This document shows, one piece after another, positions 4,534 to 20,986 of a stretch of DNA of 21,903 nt. Made by a program: the position numbers and the translations under genes. Position 1 is the stretch's first letter, and each line of letters opens with the position of its first letter. The DNA is taken from positions 1-21,903 of the forward strand of contig NW_021836986.1 of the NCBI RefSeq assembly GCF_006345805.1, in the 5' to 3' direction. This DNA is from Octopus sinensis (taxonomy: Eukaryota). Below the pieces are notes generated by a model. That model was not told the DNA's origin, ran no database searches, and worked only from the letters and a program-made list of their open reading frames with translations.

Positions 4534-7463
4534 TCCTTAAATCCTTAAAAATGTTTTAGCCCGAAGGCCGCGGCCATGCTGGGGCACCACCTCTGAATGA
4601 GCTACACTAGTTTGTGAATCCACCTCTGATACGTGGCACTTGATCAACAAGGGAGTTCGATGCTGCTGCCCGCATCCGTGTCTCCTGTCGTGAGGTAGGT
4701 TCATCTGGGACTCCCAACAAGAAGAGATCCAGTTTAGTTTTAAAGAAACCCACATCCACACCATGTAAGTCTCTCAGGCATTTAGGGAGGATGTTAAAGA
4801 GCTGTGGTCCTCTGAAACCCAAGCTGTTGCAGTATCTGGACCTGTATTTTGATGGTGATGTTGGAATCCTTGGCACCACGCAGCGGCGCCCCGTTCTGCG
4901 GTTGGAGTACTTTGAATGCCAAAGTTTGGGACAAGACCCTCCAGGATTTTCCAGATGTATATCACTGCATATCTCTCCCGCCTCCGCTCCAGGGAGAAGA
5001 GGTTTAATACCTTCAGTCTTTCCAGTAGCTGACATTTTGCATTGAGACGATTTTCTTTGTGTAGCTTCTCTGAGTTGCTTCGAGTTCTGCTGTTTGTTTT
5101 ATATTGTGTGGTGACCAAAGTTGGGAGCAGTAGTCCAAGCGGCTGAGGACAAATGTTTTCCATAGGACCATCAGTGTCTCCTTCTCTCTTGTTCTGAAAG
5201 TTCGGAGAATCCATCCAGCTAGCCGTCTGCATTTTATCACCAGATTAGCAATATGCATTTGGAAAGATGCATCATTGCTCATGTCAATGCCCAGGTCACG
5301 CACTGATTTTGACTCAGGGATTGCAATTCTTCCTGGGCCAGTGTATCCAGTCTTCACGTCATTTACCTTTGTGTGCCAGTAGCGCAGGGCCTGGAACTTA
5401 CCTGCATTAAACTGCATGTTGTTGTCCTCAGCCCACCTGTATATTGTGTCCAGCTCATGTTGCAGATGCGCAATATTTTCAGGGTTTTGTATTGCGTGGG
5501 AGACTTTTGTGTCATCTGCATAGCTAGCAAGGGTGGTCATCGTAGCAACTGAAGGCATGTCTGAAAGGGCCACTATGAACATCAGTGGCCCCAAGACAGT
5601 GCCCTGTGGGACACCGCTTGTTATTTGCGTTCCCTGGAGGTGGCTCCATTGCTCACAACTGCCTGTTTTCTGCCTTTTAGGAAGTTGTGCAGCCACTCTC
5701 CAAGTTTCCCGCCTATGCCGAGACCACGCAGTTTGTGACAGATCATACCATGGTCGACTTTATCAAAGGCTTTTGCAAAGTCAAGATATATTACATCCAC
5801 ATTTGAGCCATTTAGTAGCTGTTTCAACACCCAGTCATAGTGTTGCAGGAGCTGTGTTAGGCAGCCTCTACCTGGTCGAAATCCATGCTGGGTGTCAGAC
5901 AGTAAGTCATTTTCTTCAAGGAACATGATTAGTTTCTTACGGACTATTCGTTCCATGACTTTGCTGATGTGTGAGGTCAGAGAGATAGGCCTATAATTTT
6001 TAGCATCTGCTCTGCTACCTCCCTTATGGATAGGGCATATTACCCCCTCTTTCAGTTTGACTGGGAGCTTACCACTTGCAAGAAAGCTCTGAAAAAGAAG
6101 CTGTAGCGGTTTTGCAAGGGCTCGTTTGCACGATTTGAGAAGGATCGCTGGGAATCCATCAGGTCCAGCAGCTGAGTTTGTGTCAATCTCATCAATGGCT
6201 AGTGTGATATCATCTTCTTCGATGTTGATGTACTCAATTTTTGTCTCTTTGGTCGCTGGTAAAGTGGCAAAGAATTCTTCTGGGTTGTTTACTTGCCTGT
6301 GTCCTAGAGGTGTAGTGAACACACTTTGGAACTGTTCATTCAGTATTTCACTTATCCTCGTGGGATTTCCTGTGAGAGAGCCATCTTTTTGGAAGAGAGG
6401 TCCTATTCTCTGGTGCACTGTGGCTGTCTCTTTGGCAAACTTAAAGAAAGCTTTAGGGTTTGATTTTATATTTTCTATTACCCAAGCTTCTTTATCTGCT
6501 CTCTCCTTTTCATGGGACTGATGTAGACTTTTCTCAGTTTCCATTAGCATTCTTTCGAGCCGAGACTTCTCACCACTTTTGGTGTGCTTGCTCAGGCGGT
6601 TTGCAATCCTTGTCCGTCGTCTCATAAGAATCCTCCTTTCTCTAGGGATCCTGTTTTTGTTCTTGTGTGTGCTGGCCCTGCACATTGGGACATATTTGTC
6701 ACATATGGCTTGTATTATGGACATGAAGTGTGTTGTGTTTCATGTTTATGTCCGGTGTGGAGAGACATTCAGGCCAATCCTGTTTGAGGATCTCTTTCTC
6801 AATCGACTTCCAGTTGGCTTTATGAAAGTTTAAGTTGGAGAGATGGTGGGTGCTTCGTATAGGCTGTGTGTCTGCGGGGGCTTTTGTTCCATACATAGAT
6901 AGCTCTATTATGTTGTGATCCGAGATCATTGTCGGCATCACATTAACATTATGGATAATATCCATATTGTTTGTAAAGCAGAGATCCAGTATATTATCTG
7001 CCCTTGTTGGTTGCAGAACTATTTGCTCCATGAAAGAGGTATTTGTGAGATGGAGCAGGGACTCCACCTGTGCCTGCTGATGGTGTGTCATCCCTGGGAG
7101 CATCTGCCCCCCAGGCCATTCCACATTGGGGAGGTTAAAGTCACCCATGAAGAATACACTGTTGTGCTGTTCAAGGTTGGTGAGGACTCCTATTTTTGTT
7201 AGGCAGTCTTCAAACATGCCTGAGTGTTTTGGGGCGTCTGGTGGGCGATATGTAGTGCATATGACGATATTCAGTTGTCTTATGTGTACAATTTGAGTTT
7301 CACATACTGAGTTTGAATATGACAGCAGGACCTGGGGCGTGAGGTCATCTCGGATGTACATTGCAACTCCACCATGGCTCCTCCCTTTTCTATCTGTGCG
7401 TATGACTGCATATTGCGGCATGTGTATTTCTGCATCACCTATATCGGGTTCAAGATGCGTTTC
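4534..7463 (-). mobile_element. 5'-truncated non-LTR retrotransposon (LINE), CR1/L2 group
   Basis: APE endonuclease plus reverse transcriptase ORF, short 3' UTR and terminal (TTTAAGGA)x2 at 4534-4549. It is truncated at the ETHL motif and both ends abut (TA)n. Confidence 0.95.
4607..7463 (-). pseudogene. LINE ORF2 (APE endonuclease + RT), split by four apparent 1-bp frameshifts
   Basis: APE motifs: ETHL, RTDRKGRSHGGVAMY, YRPP, MGDFNLP, LDLCF, SDHN. RT motifs: NYRPISLTS, QHGFRPGRGC, YLDFAKAFDKVDH, GVPQGTVLGP, YADD. The C-terminus reads PDEP..RAAASNSL. Frameshifts are near 6728, 5630, 5021 and 4908. Confidence 0.93.
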
Positions 7464-7471
7464 TATATATA

Positions 7472-8376
7472 TATAATTAATTAATAAGGGTGAGAGAATT
7501 AGATACTAATTTAATAGTATATCTATTCTACACCAAGTGGCCTAGTGCTCCGAGAAACCTGGATTATTATAATATTTTTAATATATTATAATATTTTTAC
7601 AAAATAAATATAAGAGAGTGGTCCTATATGGCTCACTCTAGCACCAGTTAATCATAGGTTTCAACCACCAAAAATACATGTTTCCCATGAAAGTCAGTAC
7701 GATTGTTAGCTCACACGGACAGGGCAAATAAAAAATAACAAAAATACAGATTATTTTGGGACAATTGTTTCGCTATTAATGAATTAAATGTAATTTTACT
7801 TACAAAAAAATCCACTTGTAGCTCCTCAGCCAAAACTATCTGGATGAAATCCACTCAATCACACTCCAGATTTTATCATAACGATAAATACGCGTGTGGT
7901 TCAATTGATTACATCCGACGTTATAATTCAAATGCCCCAACTAACAGCGCGCCAAATTTTCAGGGAAAACAAATACAGCATTTAGAAATAAATGCAGCAT
8001 AATTATAATTAATTAATAAGGGTGAGAGAATTAGATACTAATTTAATAGTATATCTATTCTACACCGACTTTCATGGGAAACATGTATTTTTGTGGTTGA
8101 AACCTATTGGGTAAACTGGTGCTGGAGTGAGCCATATAGTGACCACTCTCTTATATTTATTTTGTAAAAATATTATAATATATTATAAAATATTATAATA
8201 ATCCAGGTTTCTCGGAGCACTAGGCCACTTGGTGTAGAATAGATATACTATTAAATTAGTATCTATTCTCTCACCCTTATTAATTAATTATATTATGCTG
8301 CATTATTTCTAAATGCTGTATTTGTTTTCCGGGAAAATTTGGCGCGCTGTTAGTTGGGGCATTTGAATTATAACGT
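7472..8376. mobile_element. Hammerhead-bearing element (retrozyme / Penelope pseudo-LTR-like): 532-bp unit with 63-bp terminal redundancy plus inverted partial copy
   Basis: 7472-7534 is identical to 8004-8066. 7472-7695 is the near-exact reverse complement of 8067-8291. 7918-8066 is the near-exact reverse complement of 8231-8376. It is flanked by (TA)n on both sides and contains the hammerhead at 7747-7842. Confidence 0.7.
7747..7842 (-). ncRNA. Type I hammerhead ribozyme with complete canonical core
   Basis: Minus RNA: CAGAU-A-GUUUUGG [CUGAGGA] GCUA...UAGC [GAAAC] AAUU [GUC]^CCAAAAU-A-AUCUG. Stems I, II and III all pair by eye. Predicted cleavage is between 7760 and 7759. Confidence 0.85.
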
Positions 8377-8394
8377 ATTATATATATATTATAT

Positions 8395-8442
<48 letters not shown>
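8377..8442. repeat. (AT)n followed by (AG)n
   Basis: Directly visible. Confidence 0.95.
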
Positions 8443-8445
<3 letters not shown>

Positions 8446-9307: not shown

Positions 9308-9570
9308 AGACGGAAACTGAACGAAGCTTGTCGTATGTATATATGTGTGTGTGTATGCATTTGTTTGTGTGTCTATGCTTGTTCCCACCCCCCAACATCG
9401 CTTGACAACCTATGCTGGTGTATTTACGTTCCCGTCACTAAGCGGTTCGGTAAGAGAGACCGATAGAATAAGTACTAGGCTTACAAAGAACAAGTCCTGG
9501 TGTCGATTTGCTCGACTAAAGGCGGTGCTCCAGCATGGCTGCAGCCAAATGACTGAAACAAATAAAAAAA
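9308..9570 (+). mobile_element. SINE family A, 5'-truncated
   Basis: Matches 15570-15830, with a full 3' tail at 9521-9570. Confidence 0.88.
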
Positions 9571-9769: not shown

Positions 9770-10491
9770 ATCTCCAGAAAACTGGAAAACCCCTAAATCT
9801 GGGCCAGATCCGGTCCCAAGCTTGCTGGATATTTGATCTGGTATCATATTTAGCAGTTAATATATAAATTTGTATTCTTTTGGCCTAACATTCGTCAACT
9901 CATGAAACTAAGATGAAATACGTTGGTATATTAGACATTAGTGGAAGAAAACAGTCTGCACAGTCAAGGTGGAGATCGGATTATAGGAGTAAGTGAAGGA
10001 TTATTAGATATACAATTTGATTCATTTAGGGAGGGAGGGTTCGTATCGGGCCAGTAACCAATCAAAATCGTTATCGCTAACTTCGCGCGCCGAAGTGTAC
10101 GTTATGCTAATAGCGTTCAAGGACGTCTATGCCGCATGACACAACCCAGGCAGTTCTAAACAGTTGCTGCACCTTAATTTACAAATATATACACAACAGA
10201 GTACAACTCACTTCTGTGGTGAATCATTCACTTCACACATACACACATTGCTCATATTCTTTATAAATAAAACCATAAAAACAGCATTTGCGGTTGGCTA
10301 GCAAATTTTCATCTATCAACAATCACGATTATAGCTTTGAAAAATTTCAAGATATAATTTTAACATTTTACATAAATTTGAATCCACGAACTTCTAAGCC
10401 TGGTTATTTTTGTAGATATTCTTCGAAGATGTGACTTAAACCTTTCACACGATTAGTTTAAATTTAAGACGGAAAATTTGCAGTTACTTAT

Positions 10492-10636
10492 CTTTTATTT
10501 GTTTCGGTCATTGGACTGAGGTTATGCTGGGGACGCCACCTTAAAGGGTTTTAGTAAAACAAATCGCCGCTAGAACTTATCTTTTAAGCTTAGGGTTTAT
10601 TCTGTCGGCCGAAGGTTGTCAAGCGGTGTGGCACTC

Positions 10637-10668
<32 letters not shown>

Positions 10669-11477
10669 CACACACACACAGAGATATAGATATACACGAC
10701 GGGCCTTTTTTTAGTTTCCAATTTCTTTGCTGCCCACAAGTGGCTACACGCAGAGAGGACAAACGGATTAAGTCGATTATATCGACCCCAGTGCGTAACT
10801 GGTACTTATTCAATCGAGATCGAAAGGGTGAAAGACAAAGTCGACCTCGGCGGAATTTGAACTCAGAACGTAGCGGCAGACGAAATACCGCTAGGCTTTT
10901 CGCCCGGCGTGCTAACGTTTCTTATTTCTTTATTGCCCACAAGGGACTACACACAGAGGGGACAAACAAGGACAGATAAACAGATTAAGCCGATTACATC
11001 GATCCCAGTGCGTAACTGGTACTTAATTTATCGACCCCGAAAGGATGAAAGGCAAAGTCGACCTCGGCGGAATTTGAACTCAGAACGTAGCGGCAGACGA
11101 AATACCTATTTCTTTACTACCCACAAGGGGCTAAACACAGAGAGGACAAACAAGGACAGACAAACGGATTAAGTCGATTACATCGACCCCAGTGCGTAAC
11201 TGGTACTTACTTAATCGACCCCGAAAGGATGAAAGGCAAAGTCGACCTCGGCGGAATTTGAACTCAGAACGTAGCGGCAGACGAAATACCGCTAAACATT
11301 TCGCCCGGCGTGCTAACGTTTCTGCGAGTTCGCCGCCTTCTTTTAGTTTCCGTCTTTCAGATCTACTCAGAAGGCTGTGGTGGACCTAAGACTACAGTAG
11401 GAGACACTTGTCCAAGGTATCATGCGGTGGAACTGAACCCGGAACCTTACGATTTGGAAGCAAACTTCTTCCCAACC
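10492..11477 (-). mobile_element. Older family A SINE split by the family C trimer
   Basis: The 3' part (10492-10719) and 5' part (11341-11477) resume at the duplicated TTTTAGTTTCC. Confidence 0.75.
10720..11340 (-). mobile_element. SINE family C trimer with 11-bp target-site duplication
   Basis: Three head-to-tail units at about 10721-10922, 10923-11106 and 11107-11339; only the last has a complete head (AAGGCGGCGA..). TSD TTTTAGTTTCC is at 10709-10719 and 11341-11351. The central CCTTTCATCCTTTCGGGGTCGAT resembles, from memory, the MetaSINE-type domain. Confidence 0.9.
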
Positions 11478-11881: not shown

Positions 11882-12252
11882 GTATTTTAAAGAATGTTAA
11901 TAGTAAATGAAAAAAAAAAAGGTTGTATAAGCTAAATAATAGTCTTTGTTGTAAACAAGAATGCATTTCTTTTCTTAAGATATGACATATGTGTAGGACG
12001 AATCGGAATGGTGACTCGAAAAATGTGGGGGTGGGGCGTGGATGGGGTATGATACAGAAAAATGTAAGAAAGATTGGCATAAACTGATGTCTCTGACATA
12101 GAGAAAAGAAAGACATTATTACTACCCTCAATCAATATGAACCGCTCCTCTGTTGATAGATTTTATTTACTTCAAGCAATTTTCTGTATTTACAAAATGT
12201 GCGTCAGACAAAACTAAGGGAGCGAGCCAATGACTCGTTTTTGGTTGTTGGG

Positions 12253-12288
<36 letters not shown>

Positions 12289-12550
12289 CGATGACGATGA
12301 TGATGACGATGATGATGACGATGATGATGATGATGATGATGATGACGATGAGGATGATGATGATGAGGATGATGATGATGATGATGAAGATAATGATGAT
12401 GATGATGATGATGACGATGATGATGACGATGACGACGATGAGGATGATGATGATGAGGAGGAGGAGGAAGAGGACAACGGCTATGATGCTAATGAGGATG
12501 ATGATGGTGATGACGACGGTGATAACGGCGACGATGATGATGATGATGAG
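12253..12550. repeat. Degenerate (GAT)n trinucleotide array with GAC/GAG variants
   Basis: Directly visible. It produces homopolymer ORFs in several frames on both strands. Confidence 0.95.
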
Positions 12551-12622
12551 AAGGAGGGGAGGAGAAGGTGGAGGAAGAGAAAGAGGAAATTCAGAATAAA
12601 ACCAATAACTTCTTAGTCTCAA

Positions 12623-12828
12623 TGTGGTCGCTCGTCATGCTTGAAGTAGCAGCCAAATCTCTCCTTCAAATCACATTCTTAACATTGTATTGAGCAAAAA
12701 CAAAACAAAAAAGTGTAAAGGAGGGATTACACAACGTAATCCAATCAGAGAAAAACTACGTCTAAATTAAAGATGGGACAGTTACGGTCGGATTATCTTT
12801 GATTATAGGATCCGATTGATGAACAACA
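12623..12828 (+). mobile_element. Interspersed repeat family E (SINE-like, AAC tail), decayed
   Basis: Shares GTGGTCGCT..TGCT(A/T)GAA..AGCAGCCAAATC and a 3' GGA(T/C)GGTC..GATCATAG-like block with 16897-17085, 17124-17310 and 17357-17480. Confidence 0.55.
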
Positions 12829-12835
12829 CCATCCA

Positions 12836-13035
12836 CGACGACGACCACCACCACCACCAAGTTGACGTCGTCGACGACAACCTCTACCACCACCACGTTG
12901 ACGACGACGGCACAACGACGACGACCATCACTACCACCGCCACCACCACCATCATCACCATCACCACCACCACCACCACCGCCACCACCACCACCAACAC
13001 TACCACCACGTTGACAACGACAACGATGACAACCA
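12836..13035. repeat. Degenerate (ACC/ACG)n trinucleotide array
   Basis: Directly visible. It follows the family E tail. Confidence 0.9.
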
Positions 13036-13277
13036 TATTGATTTCACTACTATTTTTCATTTTTCCTTCTTATTTTATAGTTCTTTCTCTAAGATCATCG
13101 AATATCTTTCGGAGATCGATAAACGTTTGATGGAGACACTTCTGATTGTTGTGCCATCAACTGCATCGATTAGGGGATGTCAGCAATGGTATTTACAAAG
13201 GGAGTGGGGGGGCGTTACCATTTCGTGTGCAATCTATGGTTTGAGTATTGAGTATAGCTGTGTGTGTTGTGTATATT

Positions 13278-13510
13278 CCTTTACTTGTTTCAGTTATTAG
13301 ACTCCGACCATGCTGGGGCACCGCATTCAAGAACTTTTAGTATTCCTTTTCACTTTTTAAACCCTAGTACATATTCTATCGCCTTCTTTTGCCGAACCGC
13401 TAGTGTACAGGAACGCGAATAAACCAGCACCGGTTGTAAAGCGGTGGTTGTGCGGCAAACACGCGCGCACGCATATATACACGACGGGCTTCTTTCCGTT
13501 TCCCTCTACT
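13278..13510 (-). mobile_element. SINE family A (older subfamily), head missing
   Basis: Tail GCGGTGCCCCAGCATGGTCGG on minus; the body matches 143-330 and 700-730. Confidence 0.75.
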
Positions 13511-15489: not shown

Positions 15490-15830
15490 AGGCGCAGGAG
15501 TGGCTGTGTGGTAAGTAGTTTGCTTACCAACCACATGGTTCCGGGTTCAGTCCTACAGCGTAGTGGATTTGGTAGACGGAAACTTAAAGAAGCCTGTCGT
15601 ATCTATGTATATATATATATATGTATGTGTGTGTCTGTGTTTGTCCCCACTCAACATCGCTTGACAACCGATGCTGGTGTGTTTATGTCCCAGTAACTTA
15701 GCAGTTCGGCAAAAGAGACCGATAGAATAAGTACTAGGCTTACAAAAAATAACTCCTGGAGTCGATTTGCTCGACTAAAGGCGGTGCTCCAGCATGACCG
15801 CAGTCAAATGACTGAAACAAGTAAAAGATA
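15490..15830 (+). mobile_element. Young family A SINE lacking the ~54-bp CORE-like segment
   Basis: Intact A-box TGGCTGTGTGG and B-box GGTTCAGTCC. The segment present in 9606-9769 is absent at 15561/15562. Confidence 0.88.
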
Positions 15831-15986: not shown

Positions 15987-16204
15987 GGGATGACAGTGGA
16001 AAAAAAAGGAAAGAGAGAAAATGGTGTAGGATCATTAAATAGAAGGTAGGTGGCGTTTTGTGGTCGTTGGTTGGGGGGGAATCAATGGTGAACACAAACA
16101 TGGTTTGGTGTTTATATGTATTTTTGAGGTAGGACGAAATGAATCAATATGGCGACACGTGCCGGACTGGGACGGACCCCCAGCTTGTTATAATCGTAAA
16201 ACAG

Positions 16205-16207
<3 letters not shown>

Positions 16208-16243
<36 letters not shown>

Positions 16244-16345
16244 TGTGAATGTGGGTGTTGTTTTTGGGTGTGTGGGCGGGTGGACAGACTGTGCATATGC
16301 AGAAAGCGTGTGCAAATGTGTGTGCAAATGTGTGTGTGTGTGTTT
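16208..16345. repeat. (GT)n-rich region
   Basis: Directly visible. Confidence 0.9.
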
Positions 16346-16380
16346 ACACGTGTTGTCTCGCCAATTGGGAAAATTACGGA

Positions 16381-16406
16381 TGCTGCTGCTACTGCTGCTG
16401 CTGCTG

Positions 16407-16445
<39 letters not shown>

Positions 16446-16554
16446 GTACTACTACTACTACTATCACCACCAACATCACTACCCTCACTACTATCACCAA
16501 CACCACATGCCCCACTACTACTACTACTACTACCACCACCAACATCACTACCCC

Positions 16555-16594
<40 letters not shown>

Positions 16595-16800
16595 CATATC
16601 GCTAAAAATGTATTGATATTAGTATCAATACTACCACCTTCACACGTCTCAAGACGACTATCACCTATTACCTTCACCACTGCCACAACCCACCCTACTA
16701 CCGTCATTGTCACCACCATCACCACCACTACCAGTACTACTATTACCTCCACCGTCTACACCACCACCACCAACACCATCACTATTTACACGATTGCTTT
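16381..16800. repeat. Compound trinucleotide array (GCT)n, then (ACT)n, then (ACC)n
   Basis: Directly visible. Confidence 0.92.
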
Positions 16801-17480: not shown

Positions 17481-17495
17481 AAGACATTGATGAAC

Positions 17496-18065
17496 ATCGC
17501 CGCCGCCGCTACCACCACCACCATCACCACCACCCAGCACCACCACCACCACCACCACCACCACCATCCAGCACCACCACCACCACCACCCAGCACCACC
17601 AGTATCATCATCATCGTCACCACTACTACCACCATCATCGTCATAATCAACAACAAAACTACTGCTTATACTACAACTACTACTACCACCAATACTATTA
17701 CTACTATCACTACCACTACTACCACCACCGCTGCCACCGCTACCACCACCACCACCACCTCCATCGCTACTACTACTACTACTACTACTTCACTTCTGGA
17801 TCCGTCACTTTACCAACCCACCACCATCACCACACTCATCACTCCCATCGCCACTCCTTATCACAGCCATCATCCCCGCCATACGCAGCACCGTCACCAT
17901 TTCCCCCTACACCACAATAACTATCATCTCCAACATCACCATAACCATATCCCCTTAATCCTCCACCAATCCCCCCCCTATTGTAACCATTATCATCAAC
18001 ACCATCACGCCACCTGCGCACCCATCACTAGCCATCACCACCATCACCAGATACCGACCACAACA
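17496..18065. repeat. Long degenerate (CCA/CAT/CTA)n trinucleotide array
   Basis: Directly visible. Confidence 0.92.
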
Positions 18066-20314: not shown

Positions 20315-20734
20315 CGTTTCTTATTTCTTTATTGTCCACAGGGGCTAAACATAGAGGGGACAAACAAGGACAGACAAAGGGATTAAGTCGATTACATCGA
20401 CCCTAGTGTCTAACTGGTACTTAATTTATCGACCCCGAAAGGATGAAAGGCAAAGTCGACCTCGGCGGAATTTGAACTCAGAACGTAACGGCAAACGAAA
20501 TACCTGTTTCTTTACTATCCACAAGGGGCTAAACACAGAGAGGACAAACAAGGACAGAAAAACGGATTAAGTCGATTACTTCAACCCCAGTGCATAACTG
20601 GTACTTATTTATACGACCCCGAAAGGACGAAAGGCAAAGTCGACTTCGGCGGAATTTGAACTCAGAACGTAGCGGCAGACGAAATACCGCTAAGCATTTC
20701 GCCCGGCAATGCTAACGTTTCTGCCAGCTCGCCG
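20315..20734 (-). mobile_element. SINE family C dimer plus 7-nt start of a third unit
   Basis: Units at 20322-20504 and 20505-20734, with junctions matching those at 10922/10923 and 11106/11107. Confidence 0.9.
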
Positions 20735-20986
20735 TATCTAACTACCGTAATTAGCTGCCTTCCATTGCTCACAATACAAATCAACAAGGGAATCTTTGTG
20801 TCGTTGCTCTACCTGCTAGAAATAGCAACCAAGTTTTACCCTAGAGTTTTATTTAAGAGACTCTGCCATCTGAAACATGATTATTCATTTCGAAGAAATA
20901 TATTTTATACGATGTCATGCAAGAAACATCAGTCGTGTAATGTGGTGAAGATGCATTGTATATGAAACACAAATGCTCGTGTGCAC

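Follow-up and report, generated by a model that had tools for sequence, protein, structure and literature searches.

A type I hammerhead motif with an extended helix II, the probable processing module of a 535-bp repeat in Octopus sinensis

A 96-nt stretch on the minus strand of an Octopus sinensis contig (NW_021836986.1; positions 7747..7842 of the window, which is the whole 21,903-nt stretch of DNA analyzed here) carries a type I hammerhead motif, and is probably a genuine hammerhead that serves as the processing module of a non-coding, non-autonomous retroelement with a 535-bp unit, namely a metazoan non-LTR retrozyme derived from Penelope-like elements (PLEs). The motif, which occupies positions 225-320 of the repeat unit (u225-320 in unit coordinates), is recognized from its sequence, from constrained and dimer folds, from alignment to the Rfam model RF00163 and from a descriptor scan.

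Results

Read along the minus strand from 7842 to 7747, the sequence is identical to that given in the initial annotation of this DNA, and the type I topology, intact core, 12-of-13 helix I, unusually long helix II and palindromic helix III claimed there are all present in the sequence and its folds. Helix I is formed by a 5′ strand (CAGAUAGUUUUGG; minus strand, 7830..7842) and a 3′ strand (CCAAAAUAAUCUG; 7747..7759) that pair at 12 of 13 positions, with one G-U pair and one A-A mismatch. The required core nucleotides are complete, comprising CUGAGGA (C3-A9, with G at N7 in the window copy; 7823..7829, from sequence reading), GAAA (G12, A13, A14 and A15.1; 7768..7771, from the sequence and the Rfam alignment), the A15.1-U16.1 pair (A75-U82 of the 96-nt RNA) and C at H17 (C83). 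The helix II arm, placed at 7772..7822 by RNA folding, runs from GCUA/UAGC through an internal loop, an 8-bp helix and another internal loop to a 5-bp helix capped by a 6-nt loop, and it is retained together with helix I when the whole 535-nt unit is folded. In the constrained fold, GCUA/UAGC supplies the G10.1-C11.1 closing pair (G21-C71), which ranks as highly conserved among hammerheads (PMC4209133). Helix III is the palindrome ACAAUUGU (7761..7768), marked as a helix (<<<<>>>>) in the Rfam model, and folds either as 2 bp closed by an AAUU loop in the monomer or as an 8-bp duplex in the dimer. Hammerhead numbering of the sequence predicts cleavage between C17 at 7760 and position 7759 (minus strand, 7759..7760; u307|u308). 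The constrained fold is a three-helix hammerhead at -21.7 kcal/mol, with 12 of 13 positions paired in helix I, 17 bp in three segments in helix II and 2 bp in helix III, and the CM alignment is concordant. The label "canonical" given in the initial annotation suits the core and helix III but not helix II, which stands in place of the 4-bp helix plus loop 2 that is usual. Loop 2 is absent at its usual place; an internal loop lies 4 bp into helix II and the A-A mismatch 7 bp into helix I, and these two elements could replace the loop 1/loop 2 tertiary contacts.

In folding, the hammerhead was the minimum-energy structure for two copies and not for one. RNAcofold returned a double hammerhead as the minimum free energy (MFE) structure of two copies; an 8-bp helix III joins the two RNAs, the cores of both stay unpaired, and the energy is -54.6 kcal/mol versus -48.8 kcal/mol for two monomers (2 x -24.4). 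For the single 96-nt RNA, the MFE structure (-24.4 kcal/mol; z = -3.8 versus shuffles) mispairs the core, and the hammerhead fold lies 2.7 kcal/mol above this minimum. The suggestion that such RNAs act as dimers agrees with the RNAcofold result and with published dimeric motifs of such repeats, as hammerheads of retrozymes and PLEs with a short helix III are described as working in dimers (PMC4209133, PMC7229834 and PMC6765202). We infer from the sequence that the window motif may be an active self-cleaving RNA.

The alternative that survives best, although we regard it as unlikely, is that the motif descends from genuine hammerheads but has become catalytically dead or negligible and persists only through the youth of its family, which would have spread via uncleaved multimeric RNA or array expansion at the DNA level. 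Consistent with this alternative, the hammerhead is not clearly more conserved than its surroundings, with a per-site divergence of 0.0152 versus 0.017-0.021 in the flanks among copies chosen irrespective of hammerhead identity. A small sublineage with a CCGAUGA core (U4C) occurs as multi-unit arrays at two loci. The change of U4 to C is expected from established mutagenesis to kill hammerhead activity, so propagation or array growth does not depend strictly on an active core. Neither the termini of insertions nor their 5′ junctions fall at u307|308; four junctions at u311-319 were considered as 5′ ends of cDNAs that stop at the cleavage site, but none lies exactly at u308 and the match is unconvincing. 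The monomer fold is unfavorable by the margin given above, and in vitro cleavage by PLE-type hammerheads is poor, dimers included (PMC4209133). Against a dead ribozyme, at least 100 exact 96-mers with C at N7 and 41 with G at N7 keep every core nucleotide, the hammerheads of the major lineages differ at N7 only, and the active topology is the MFE of the dimer. The comparison of stem covariation across genomic copies, proposed in the initial annotation, was uninformative, with too few differences for helix covariation between the subfamily consensuses (4-6 of ~533 positions) and with in-helix variants that are rare singletons. Because of these few consensus differences and a divergence about equal to that of the flanks, neither covariation nor a signal of purifying selection appears; the family is too young to show covariation.

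The carrier of the hammerhead is a 535-bp repeat with 32% GC and no ORF. In the 2.72-Gb assembly, 716 copies lie within 3 mismatches of the 96-mer, and a 33-nt core-spanning pattern with N7 left free has 641 exact matches; the reversed-pattern control gave 0 in each search. Among the 100 matches listed, N7 is C in 68, G in 30 and U in 2. This nucleotide, the only unconstrained position of the core, is the sole subfamily-defining hammerhead difference between the two main lineages, the major of which (N7 = C) is thinly represented among the sampled loci. Folded as a circle, the unit has an MFE of -140.3 kcal/mol versus -107.0 +/- 6.7 kcal/mol for shuffles (z = -5.0), with 67% of its nucleotides paired. 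Arrays range from 1.1 to at least 12 units with a period of 535, and direct pairs of hammerheads 533-535 nt apart occur at many other loci. LTR, PBS and PPT features are absent, the sole terminal direct repeat being the tandem unit itself. Neither the unit nor the array flanks contain the RT/GIY-YIG ORF of an autonomous Penelope-like element; by eye, ORFs in 59 flanking loci are unrelated LINE-like or transposase-like fragments and low-complexity frames only, with no PLE genes by the arrays. Elsewhere in the genome, 149 of the 150 GIY-YIG matches scored, from 4846 candidates, were above the cut-off. Many of these lie in 781-aa open frames, and one 781-aa PLE also terminates in (TA)n; the GIY-YIG PLEs are possible helpers for the repeat. 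The unit has no significant similarity to the 3′ region of one abundant 781-aa PLE, and CUGANGA is absent from that region; a hammerhead unit 1.6 kb downstream of that PLE proved to be an independent (TA)n insertion. In these nucleotide comparisons, no autonomous PLE had sequence in common with the unit.

Insertion anatomy was compared at 40 loci. Outer ends adjoin (TA)n and inner 5′ junctions vary, and 34 of 66 arms exceed one unit. All 23 two-armed insertions in which both ends could be classified join one T1 terminus (~u63) with one T2 terminus (~u486-502). Diagnostic variants are common to all units and arms within a locus. The one-sided extension is 96 nt in the octopus insertions. Published PLE insertions show 5′ truncation, partial tandems, an upstream inverted copy, a one-sided "tail" of 30-40 bp and a bias toward microsatellites (PMC8557442), and the octopus insertion style matches this type of integration, tail length apart. 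The view in the initial annotation that the repeat is of the retrozyme or Penelope-like kind thus agrees with both the features of the unit and the anatomy of its insertions. Because of the heterotypic outer ends and varying inner junctions, we reject an origin as a DNA transposon or foldback element.

The same anatomy bears on a second alternative, that the repeat is satellite DNA grown by recombination or replication, as in newt satellite 2, whose hammerhead only trims transcripts without any retrotransposition. Tandem arrays with at least 12 hammerheads in ~7.5 kb (e.g., C1:95.54 Mb) would suit a satellite, as would a unit divergence within loci (2.6-2.8%) close to that between loci (3.0-3.2%). 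A satellite origin is nonetheless improbable, as short insertions occur scattered across all large scaffolds; their AT-rich 3′ ends are fixed and sit in (TA)n, their 5′ truncation points vary, and their inverted arms are joined head to head and have heterotypic ends. Such features are the marks of PLE-type target-primed reverse transcription.

That AT-rich DNA matches the hammerhead consensus by chance alone is less probable again. We scanned both strands with a generic descriptor requiring CUGANGA, at least 4 bp in helix II, GAAA, the A15.1-U16.1 pair plus at least one more pair, H17 and at least 6 contiguous helix I pairs. The 7747..7842 motif was the only match in the window versus 0 in 300 dinucleotide-preserving shuffles, and a chance origin of the motif is unlikely. 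In a search confined to 7742-7847 (106 nt), RF00163 (Hammerhead_1) aligns over its full length (model 1-45), through the core, helix I and a zero-loop helix III, with an E value of 1.2e-5 and a score of 28.5 bits, which is below the 34-bit gathering threshold. The low score is due to the 39-nt loop 2 insertion and the non-consensus helix II, in which the alignment flags two pairs as non-canonical; a shifted register restores GCUA/UAGC. RF00163 was not detected in a gathering scan of the whole window or in a 301-nt scan at E<=10, and this reflects the speed filters rather than absence of the motif. What can be said for chance is the sub-threshold score and a rough estimate that loose descriptors would find tens of random matches in a 2.7-Gb genome. 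On the other side stand the shuffles and the E value, helices I and II that far exceed the minimum lengths of the descriptor, and a palindromic helix III that yields a dimer MFE of active topology. The architecture is, moreover, common to unrelated hammerhead families of the same genome: the hammerheads that Rfam detects there have a palindromic helix III (ACAUGU, ACGAUCGU), some with 60-nt helix II inserts, and these PLE-type families (L031-L046) have no significant nucleotide similarity to the unit.

The window copy is an insertion of 1.13 direct units with 99% identity to the consensus. Its direct arm (minus strand, 7472..8066) consists of a full 535-bp unit (8066..7532) followed by 60-68 nt from the start of a second unit, stopping at the T1 terminus of the family. 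A head-to-head join at 8066/8067 leads into an inverted, 5′-truncated arm without a hammerhead (plus strand, 8067..8376; u369-535 followed by u1-149). The T1 end is bordered by (TA)4 (7464..7471), like the (TA)n junctions at other loci, and the other end by TA-rich sequence followed by a (GA)n microsatellite (8377..8445). With one hammerhead, the locus could not release a unit-length RNA alone and would require a partner RNA in trans; because its hammerhead is single, the window copy is probably an inert end product and not one that gives rise to further copies. The adjoining reverse transcriptase in the window is of the LINE type with an APE endonuclease and is not Penelope-like. HDV-like ribozymes of R2 and L1Tc offer a parallel for a 5′ processing ribozyme of such an element, and the hammerhead lies 326 nt upstream of, and on the same strand as, the APE endonuclease and reverse transcriptase frame (7421..4607), but that role is very improbable and we reject it: homology ends at 7464-7472, short of the LINE sequence, in all 30 other loci examined, the (TA)4 junction separates the insertion from the LINE, and the hammerhead always accompanies the 535-bp unit.

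Discussion

We propose that the octopus hammerhead would process RNA of a PLE-derived retrozyme as follows. Arrays of at least two direct units would be transcribed on the hammerhead-sense strand. Because helix III is only 2 bp, two hammerheads would come together as a double hammerhead by base pairing of the palindrome ACAAUUGU, either between neighboring units at a spacing of 535 nt or between separate RNA molecules. Cleavage after GUC (u307|u308) by each active site would produce 535-nt RNAs with 5′-OH and 2′,3′-cyclic phosphate ends, and the monomer could then be closed by a host RtcB-type ligase to give a circle with extensive base pairing. Acting in trans, a PLE reverse transcriptase/GIY-YIG endonuclease would nick (TA)n microsatellites, and cDNA would be primed on either of two AU-rich RNA segments, u50-68 or u455-502. 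Copying around the circle or along a multimer would generate partial tandems, and the second DNA end would prime the inverted, 5′-truncated arm.

Since the T1/T2 pairing rule holds in all of the classifiable two-armed insertions, we tentatively raise a more specific possibility, which we think doubtful but worth stating. One template RNA, probably the 535-nt circle from hammerhead cleavage and ligation, may bridge both ends of an endonuclease-made break in (TA)n via the AU-rich segments u50-68 and u455-502, such that each DNA end primes its own cDNA and the two cDNAs join in head-to-head orientation at a position that varies. In that case, the octopus family would be an unusually clean natural record of how the inverted/tandem "pseudo-LTR" and one-sided "tail" of PLE type are formed, and the hammerhead would be tied directly to production of the bridging template.

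The octopus element adds to a known class rather than founding a new one. Hammerhead retrozymes and PLE hammerheads are well documented in animals, and the motif itself is expected biology. In the literature covered by our search, no cephalopod family of hammerheads or retrozymes is described, and no cephalopod host is mentioned in two retrozyme papers (PMC7229834; 10.64898/2026.07.22.740005) or in the supplement searched. The long helix II hides the motif from standard Rfam scans, and hammerhead counts in such genomes are likely underestimates. A very young, homogeneous family of ~700 copies with heterotypic, (TA)n-specific insertions could help to clarify the poorly understood integration of PLEs. 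The unit also provides a candidate 535-nt, highly structured circular RNA for octopus tissues.

Among known systems, metazoan non-LTR retrozymes are short, low-GC, non-coding tandem repeats with a type I hammerhead, self-paired RNA and no LTR, PBS or PPT, and their mobilization by PLEs is presumed; in vertebrates, their hammerheads have a short helix III and act as dimers (Cervera & de la Pena 2020, PMC7229834; Li, Clavereau & Pollet 2026 preprint, 10.64898/2026.07.22.740005). The octopus repeat shares the hammerhead tandems, a GC content below 45-50%, the lack of coding capacity and the highly self-paired monomer. It differs in its longer unit (535 nt versus about 170-400 nt reported for metazoan retrozymes, and somewhat above even a monomer range of about 150-450 bp), in a helix II that is a 51-nt three-segment arm instead of 4 bp with loop 2, and in its insertions, which are mostly 1-3 units in (TA)n, often with an inverted arm. 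With the hammerheads of PLE pseudo-LTRs (Cervera & de la Pena 2014, PMC4209133; Lunse, Weinberg & Breaker 2017, as cited in PMC6765202) the octopus motif has in common the type I topology, a very short palindromic helix III that implies dimers and an enlarged helix II. The insertion anatomy is alike as well, with partial tandems, an inverted 5′-truncated copy, a one-sided extension and microsatellite targets. However, the PLE carrier is autonomous, ~3 kb long and equipped with an RT/GIY-YIG ORF that the 535-bp octopus carrier lacks, and the octopus motif retains a 2-bp helix III with a 4-nt loop in place of the minimal form that has no helix III.

Newt satellite 2 and ASBVd form double hammerheads (Forster et al. 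1988, reviewed in PMC6155905) in which an unstable helix III is likewise rescued when two copies form an extended helix III, and tandem genomic repeats provide both copies in one transcript, as the octopus arrays would. They differ from the octopus motif in sequence, host and helix II architecture, and the newt repeats form long satellite arrays in contrast to the dispersed short (TA)n insertions of the octopus. The Sm-alpha/Sj-alpha SINE-like elements of Schistosoma resemble the octopus repeat in being both dispersed and tandem, non-autonomous, a few hundred bp in length and equipped with a type I hammerhead. Unlike the octopus motif, the Schistosoma hammerhead has a canonical 4-bp helix II and loop-loop tertiary contacts, and it cleaves well as a monomer.

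Results

The initial annotation had called a type I hammerhead on the minus strand from 7842 to 7747, and its transcription of that strand matches the window exactly. In hammerhead numbering, the 5′ strand of helix I (7842-7830) is followed by the core C3-A9, CUGAGGA (7829-7823), a helix II whose G10.1-C11.1 closing pair lies within GCUA/UAGC (7822-7772), the core G12-A15.1, GAAA (7771-7768), helix III (7768-7761), C17 (7760), and the 3′ strand of helix I (7759-7747), all on the minus strand. The helical details described there also held: 12 of the 13 helix I positions are paired, one of them as G-U, and the thirteenth is an A-A mismatch; the long three-helix arm folds as coaxial helix II segments of 4, 8, and 5 bp with internal loops between them; and stem III is the palindrome ACAAUUGU, corresponding to helix III of the Rfam model, which is annotated there as four pairs with a zero loop.

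A generic descriptor requiring CUGANGA, a helix II of at least 4 bp, GAAA, A15.1-U16.1 with at least one further pair, a non-G at 17, and at least six contiguous helix I pairs matched a single site on either strand of the 21.9-kb window, namely this hammerhead, and none in 300 dinucleotide-preserving shuffles. The proposed Rfam search succeeded in part. Confined to 7742-7847 (106 nt), RF00163 (Hammerhead_1) aligned over its full length (model 1-45 to 7835..7754, minus strand) at 28.5 bits (E 1.2e-5), but this falls short of the 34-bit gathering score because loop 2 carries a 39-nt insertion and helix II departs from the consensus; neither a scan of the entire window at the gathering threshold nor a permissive scan (E ≤ 10) of 301 nt around the motif returned a hammerhead match. 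The descriptor and shuffle result, together with the RF00163 match, therefore make the motif statistically real yet sub-threshold for the curated Rfam family. Ordinary cmscan runs conceal it through their speed filters, and detection of long-helix-II hammerheads is decided by filter settings, not by the model.

In the minimum free energy (MFE) structure of the 96-nt minus-strand RNA (−24.4 kcal/mol, z = −3.8), helices I and II form but part of the core is mispaired, and the constrained hammerhead fold (−21.7 kcal/mol) carries a penalty of 2.7 kcal/mol because helix III is just 2 bp closed by AAUU. Two copies folded together reached −54.6 kcal/mol versus −48.8 for two separate monomers, and the dimer MFE structure is a double hammerhead in which helix III is an intermolecular duplex of 8 bp, helices I and II are preserved, and both cores are unpaired.

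A 535-bp repeat unit (u1 = 8066, u535 = 7532, minus strand) carries the hammerhead at positions 225-320; at 32% GC, this unit is the AT-rich repeat that had been described. No ORF was found in the unit, nor any gene of Penelope-like element (PLE) type beside the arrays. Folded as a circle, the unit reaches −140.3 kcal/mol versus −107.0 ± 6.7 for shuffles (z = −5.0; 67% paired), and the full-length fold keeps hammerhead helices I and II. We searched the 2,719,151,902-bp assembly (13,516 scaffolds, the window being an unplaced one). The window 96-mer gave 41 perfect matches among 42 scored, from 943 candidates; a 33-nt core-spanning pattern with the unconstrained core position N7 left free gave 641 exact matches; and the 96-mer with N7 = C gave 716 at up to three mismatches, including at least 100 exact ones. 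The controls for this search, run with reversed patterns, gave zero matches. Among the first 100 places listed, N7 was C in 68, G (the window's state) in 30, and U in 2; the main lineage of the family has C.

Insertion anatomy was read from 157 non-redundant unit copies at 40 loci. At almost every insertion the outer ends adjoin a (TA)n microsatellite, and the 3′ ends of the arms are fixed at either of two AT-rich sites, T1 (~u63-68, of the form ...ACCCTTATTAATTAATTATA running directly into (TA)n) and T2 (~u486-502), with inner 5′ ends that vary. Arms exceed one unit in 34 of 66 cases and two units in 14, and many insertions have a second, inverted arm joined head to head. Where both ends of a two-armed insertion could be classified, the insertion was heterotypic in 23 of 23 cases (11 T1/T2, 12 T2/T1, none homotypic) and had both ends within (TA)n. 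Diagnostic variants are common to all units and both arms of a locus. The published description of PLEs (PMC8557442) includes strong 5′ truncation, pseudo-LTRs formed by partial tandems, a neighboring inverted copy with 5′ truncation, extension at one end only, and a preference for microsatellites, and this is the anatomy of the 535-bp family.

In the window, the direct arm (8066..7472, minus strand) comprises one unit plus ~63 nt and ends at T1, followed by (TA)4. The oppositely oriented arm (8067-8376) comprises u369-535 and then u1-149, without a hammerhead; it stops at neither T1 nor T2 and directly abuts TA and then a (GA)n microsatellite at 8376/8377, an atypical end that probably reflects subsequent truncation. 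Against the family consensus, the full unit shows 4 differences over 535 positions. Its hammerhead has the consensus sequence but is the only one in the insertion, which is therefore most likely inert.

Two other carriers were considered. The outer ends are heterotypic and the inner junctions variable, both of which speak against a DNA transposon bounded by terminal inverted repeats. Membership in the LINE-like retrotransposon fragment downstream on the same strand (7421..4607, minus) was rejected, as homology to the window ends at 7464-7472 at 30 of 30 other loci. The ORFs of that fragment (Exo_endo_phos_2/APE, E 5e-11; two RVT_1 halves, E 5e-15 and 8e-11) are split over several frames, and it is therefore frameshifted and decayed.

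Other repeats also populate the window. A dispersed SINE-like repeat of ~180 nt occurs in both orientations at 86-90% identity (142-318, 9389-9570, 15652-15828), and a conserved 60-nt segment (...GCCATGCTGGGGCACC...) occurs five times (139-200, 2136-2197, 4540-4601, 10488-10549, 13274-13335). A tandem repeat of 184-bp period, including the segment ATCGACCCCAGTGCGTAACTGGTACTT, lies at 10758-11425 and 20340-20823, ~9.4 kb apart, with copies 75-93% identical. Long imperfect (GAT/GAC)n and (ACC/ACT)n arrays (12196-12588, 12808-13042, 16371-16800, 17494-17890) yield open frames of 100-270 aa, which could be low-complexity exons or mere microsatellite; the frame at 16112-16597 (minus strand) has a weak, sub-threshold New_glue match (E 9e-4).

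The RF00163 genome search placed 8 of 74 scored candidates above cut-off (265,664 loose candidates), with hammerheads of up to 48 bits (loci L031-L046; for example, scaffold positions C13:29988995-29989039, C16:25146363-25146839, and C5:69975879-69975986). Some are short and PLE-type (GUACCUGAAGAGACCC...GGGUCGAAACAUGUGUYGUAC, helix III ACAUGU); a second kind, of 103-109 nt, has a ~60-nt helix II insert and helix III ACGAUCGU; and some form direct pairs 431 nt apart. Their architecture, with its palindromic helix III and in some cases long helix II, is shared with the 535-bp unit, but their sequences differ, the unit having no nucleotide similarity to them. The genome has many candidate helpers for the element: a GIY-YIG search gave 149 of 150 scored matches above the Pfam cut-off (4846 candidates), many in 781-aa open frames. 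One abundant PLE family (for example, C6:12733272-12734535, locus L077) has intact-looking 781-aa frames with GIY-YIG at the end and a 3′ region with several TGATGACGTC repeats that terminates in (TA)n. CUGANGA was absent from both strands of the 1.2 kb of this 3′ region examined; there, this PLE family would lack a canonical hammerhead.

Discussion

The 535-bp family is too young for informative evolutionary tests. Among copies selected without regard to hammerhead identity, per-site divergence from consensus is 0.0152 for the hammerhead and 0.017-0.021 for the flanks. Units diverge by 2.6-2.8% within a locus versus 3.0-3.2% between loci, and this near equality suggests spread in a single burst. 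In the covariation check across genomic copies, the consensuses of the lineages with N7 = G, with N7 = C, and with CCGAUGA differ at just 4-6 of ~533 positions. Within the hammerhead the two major lineages differ only at N7, the free core position of the consensus, which fits hammerhead constraint, if with small statistical weight. The minor CCGAUGA lineage (U4 to C, N7 = U) forms arrays of three or four tandem units at two loci (C11:18831930-18834498, which also has an inverted arm, and C14:35698697-35700906), with the variant in every unit. By established mutagenesis results, a U4-to-C change should inactivate a hammerhead, and that of this lineage is presumably inactive; its multi-unit arrays therefore suggest that some array growth or propagation, at least, is independent of an active core.

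No insertion end or junction coincides with the predicted cleavage site. Priming of the template at a 3′ end left by hammerhead cleavage is therefore disfavored, and the end positions are compatible with internal priming, at AU-rich segments, of a circular or multimeric template. We know of no published explanation for the rule that one end lies at ~u63 and the other at ~u486-502. One RNA may bridge both DNA ends via its two AU-rich segments, and such bridging would explain it.

Folding and descriptor evidence point to a genuine type I hammerhead with a short palindromic helix III, of the predicted dimer-dependent kind, and its carrier, a non-autonomous PLE-style retroelement, is best called a non-LTR retrozyme. 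By extension from the cited literature, tandem units would be transcribed, would self-cleave as dimers between u307 and u308, and would be ligated into a 535-nt circle, which PLE machinery would insert into (TA)n by target-primed reverse transcription. Double hammerheads are known for newt satellite 2 and ASBVd (PMC6155905), and dimer behavior has been described for axolotl retrozymes (PMC7229834) and PLE hammerheads (PMC4209133; PMC6765202); the window motif resembles all of these in its dimer pairing, here predicted by cofolding. The searchable literature yielded no account of a hammerhead or retrozyme family from a cephalopod. The octopus element adds to the already known class of retrozymes and PLE hammerheads, and it differs from the closest known systems in its longer unit (535 nt versus published units of 170-400 nt), its long helix II, its cephalopod host, and its strict (TA)n targeting with heterotypic ends.
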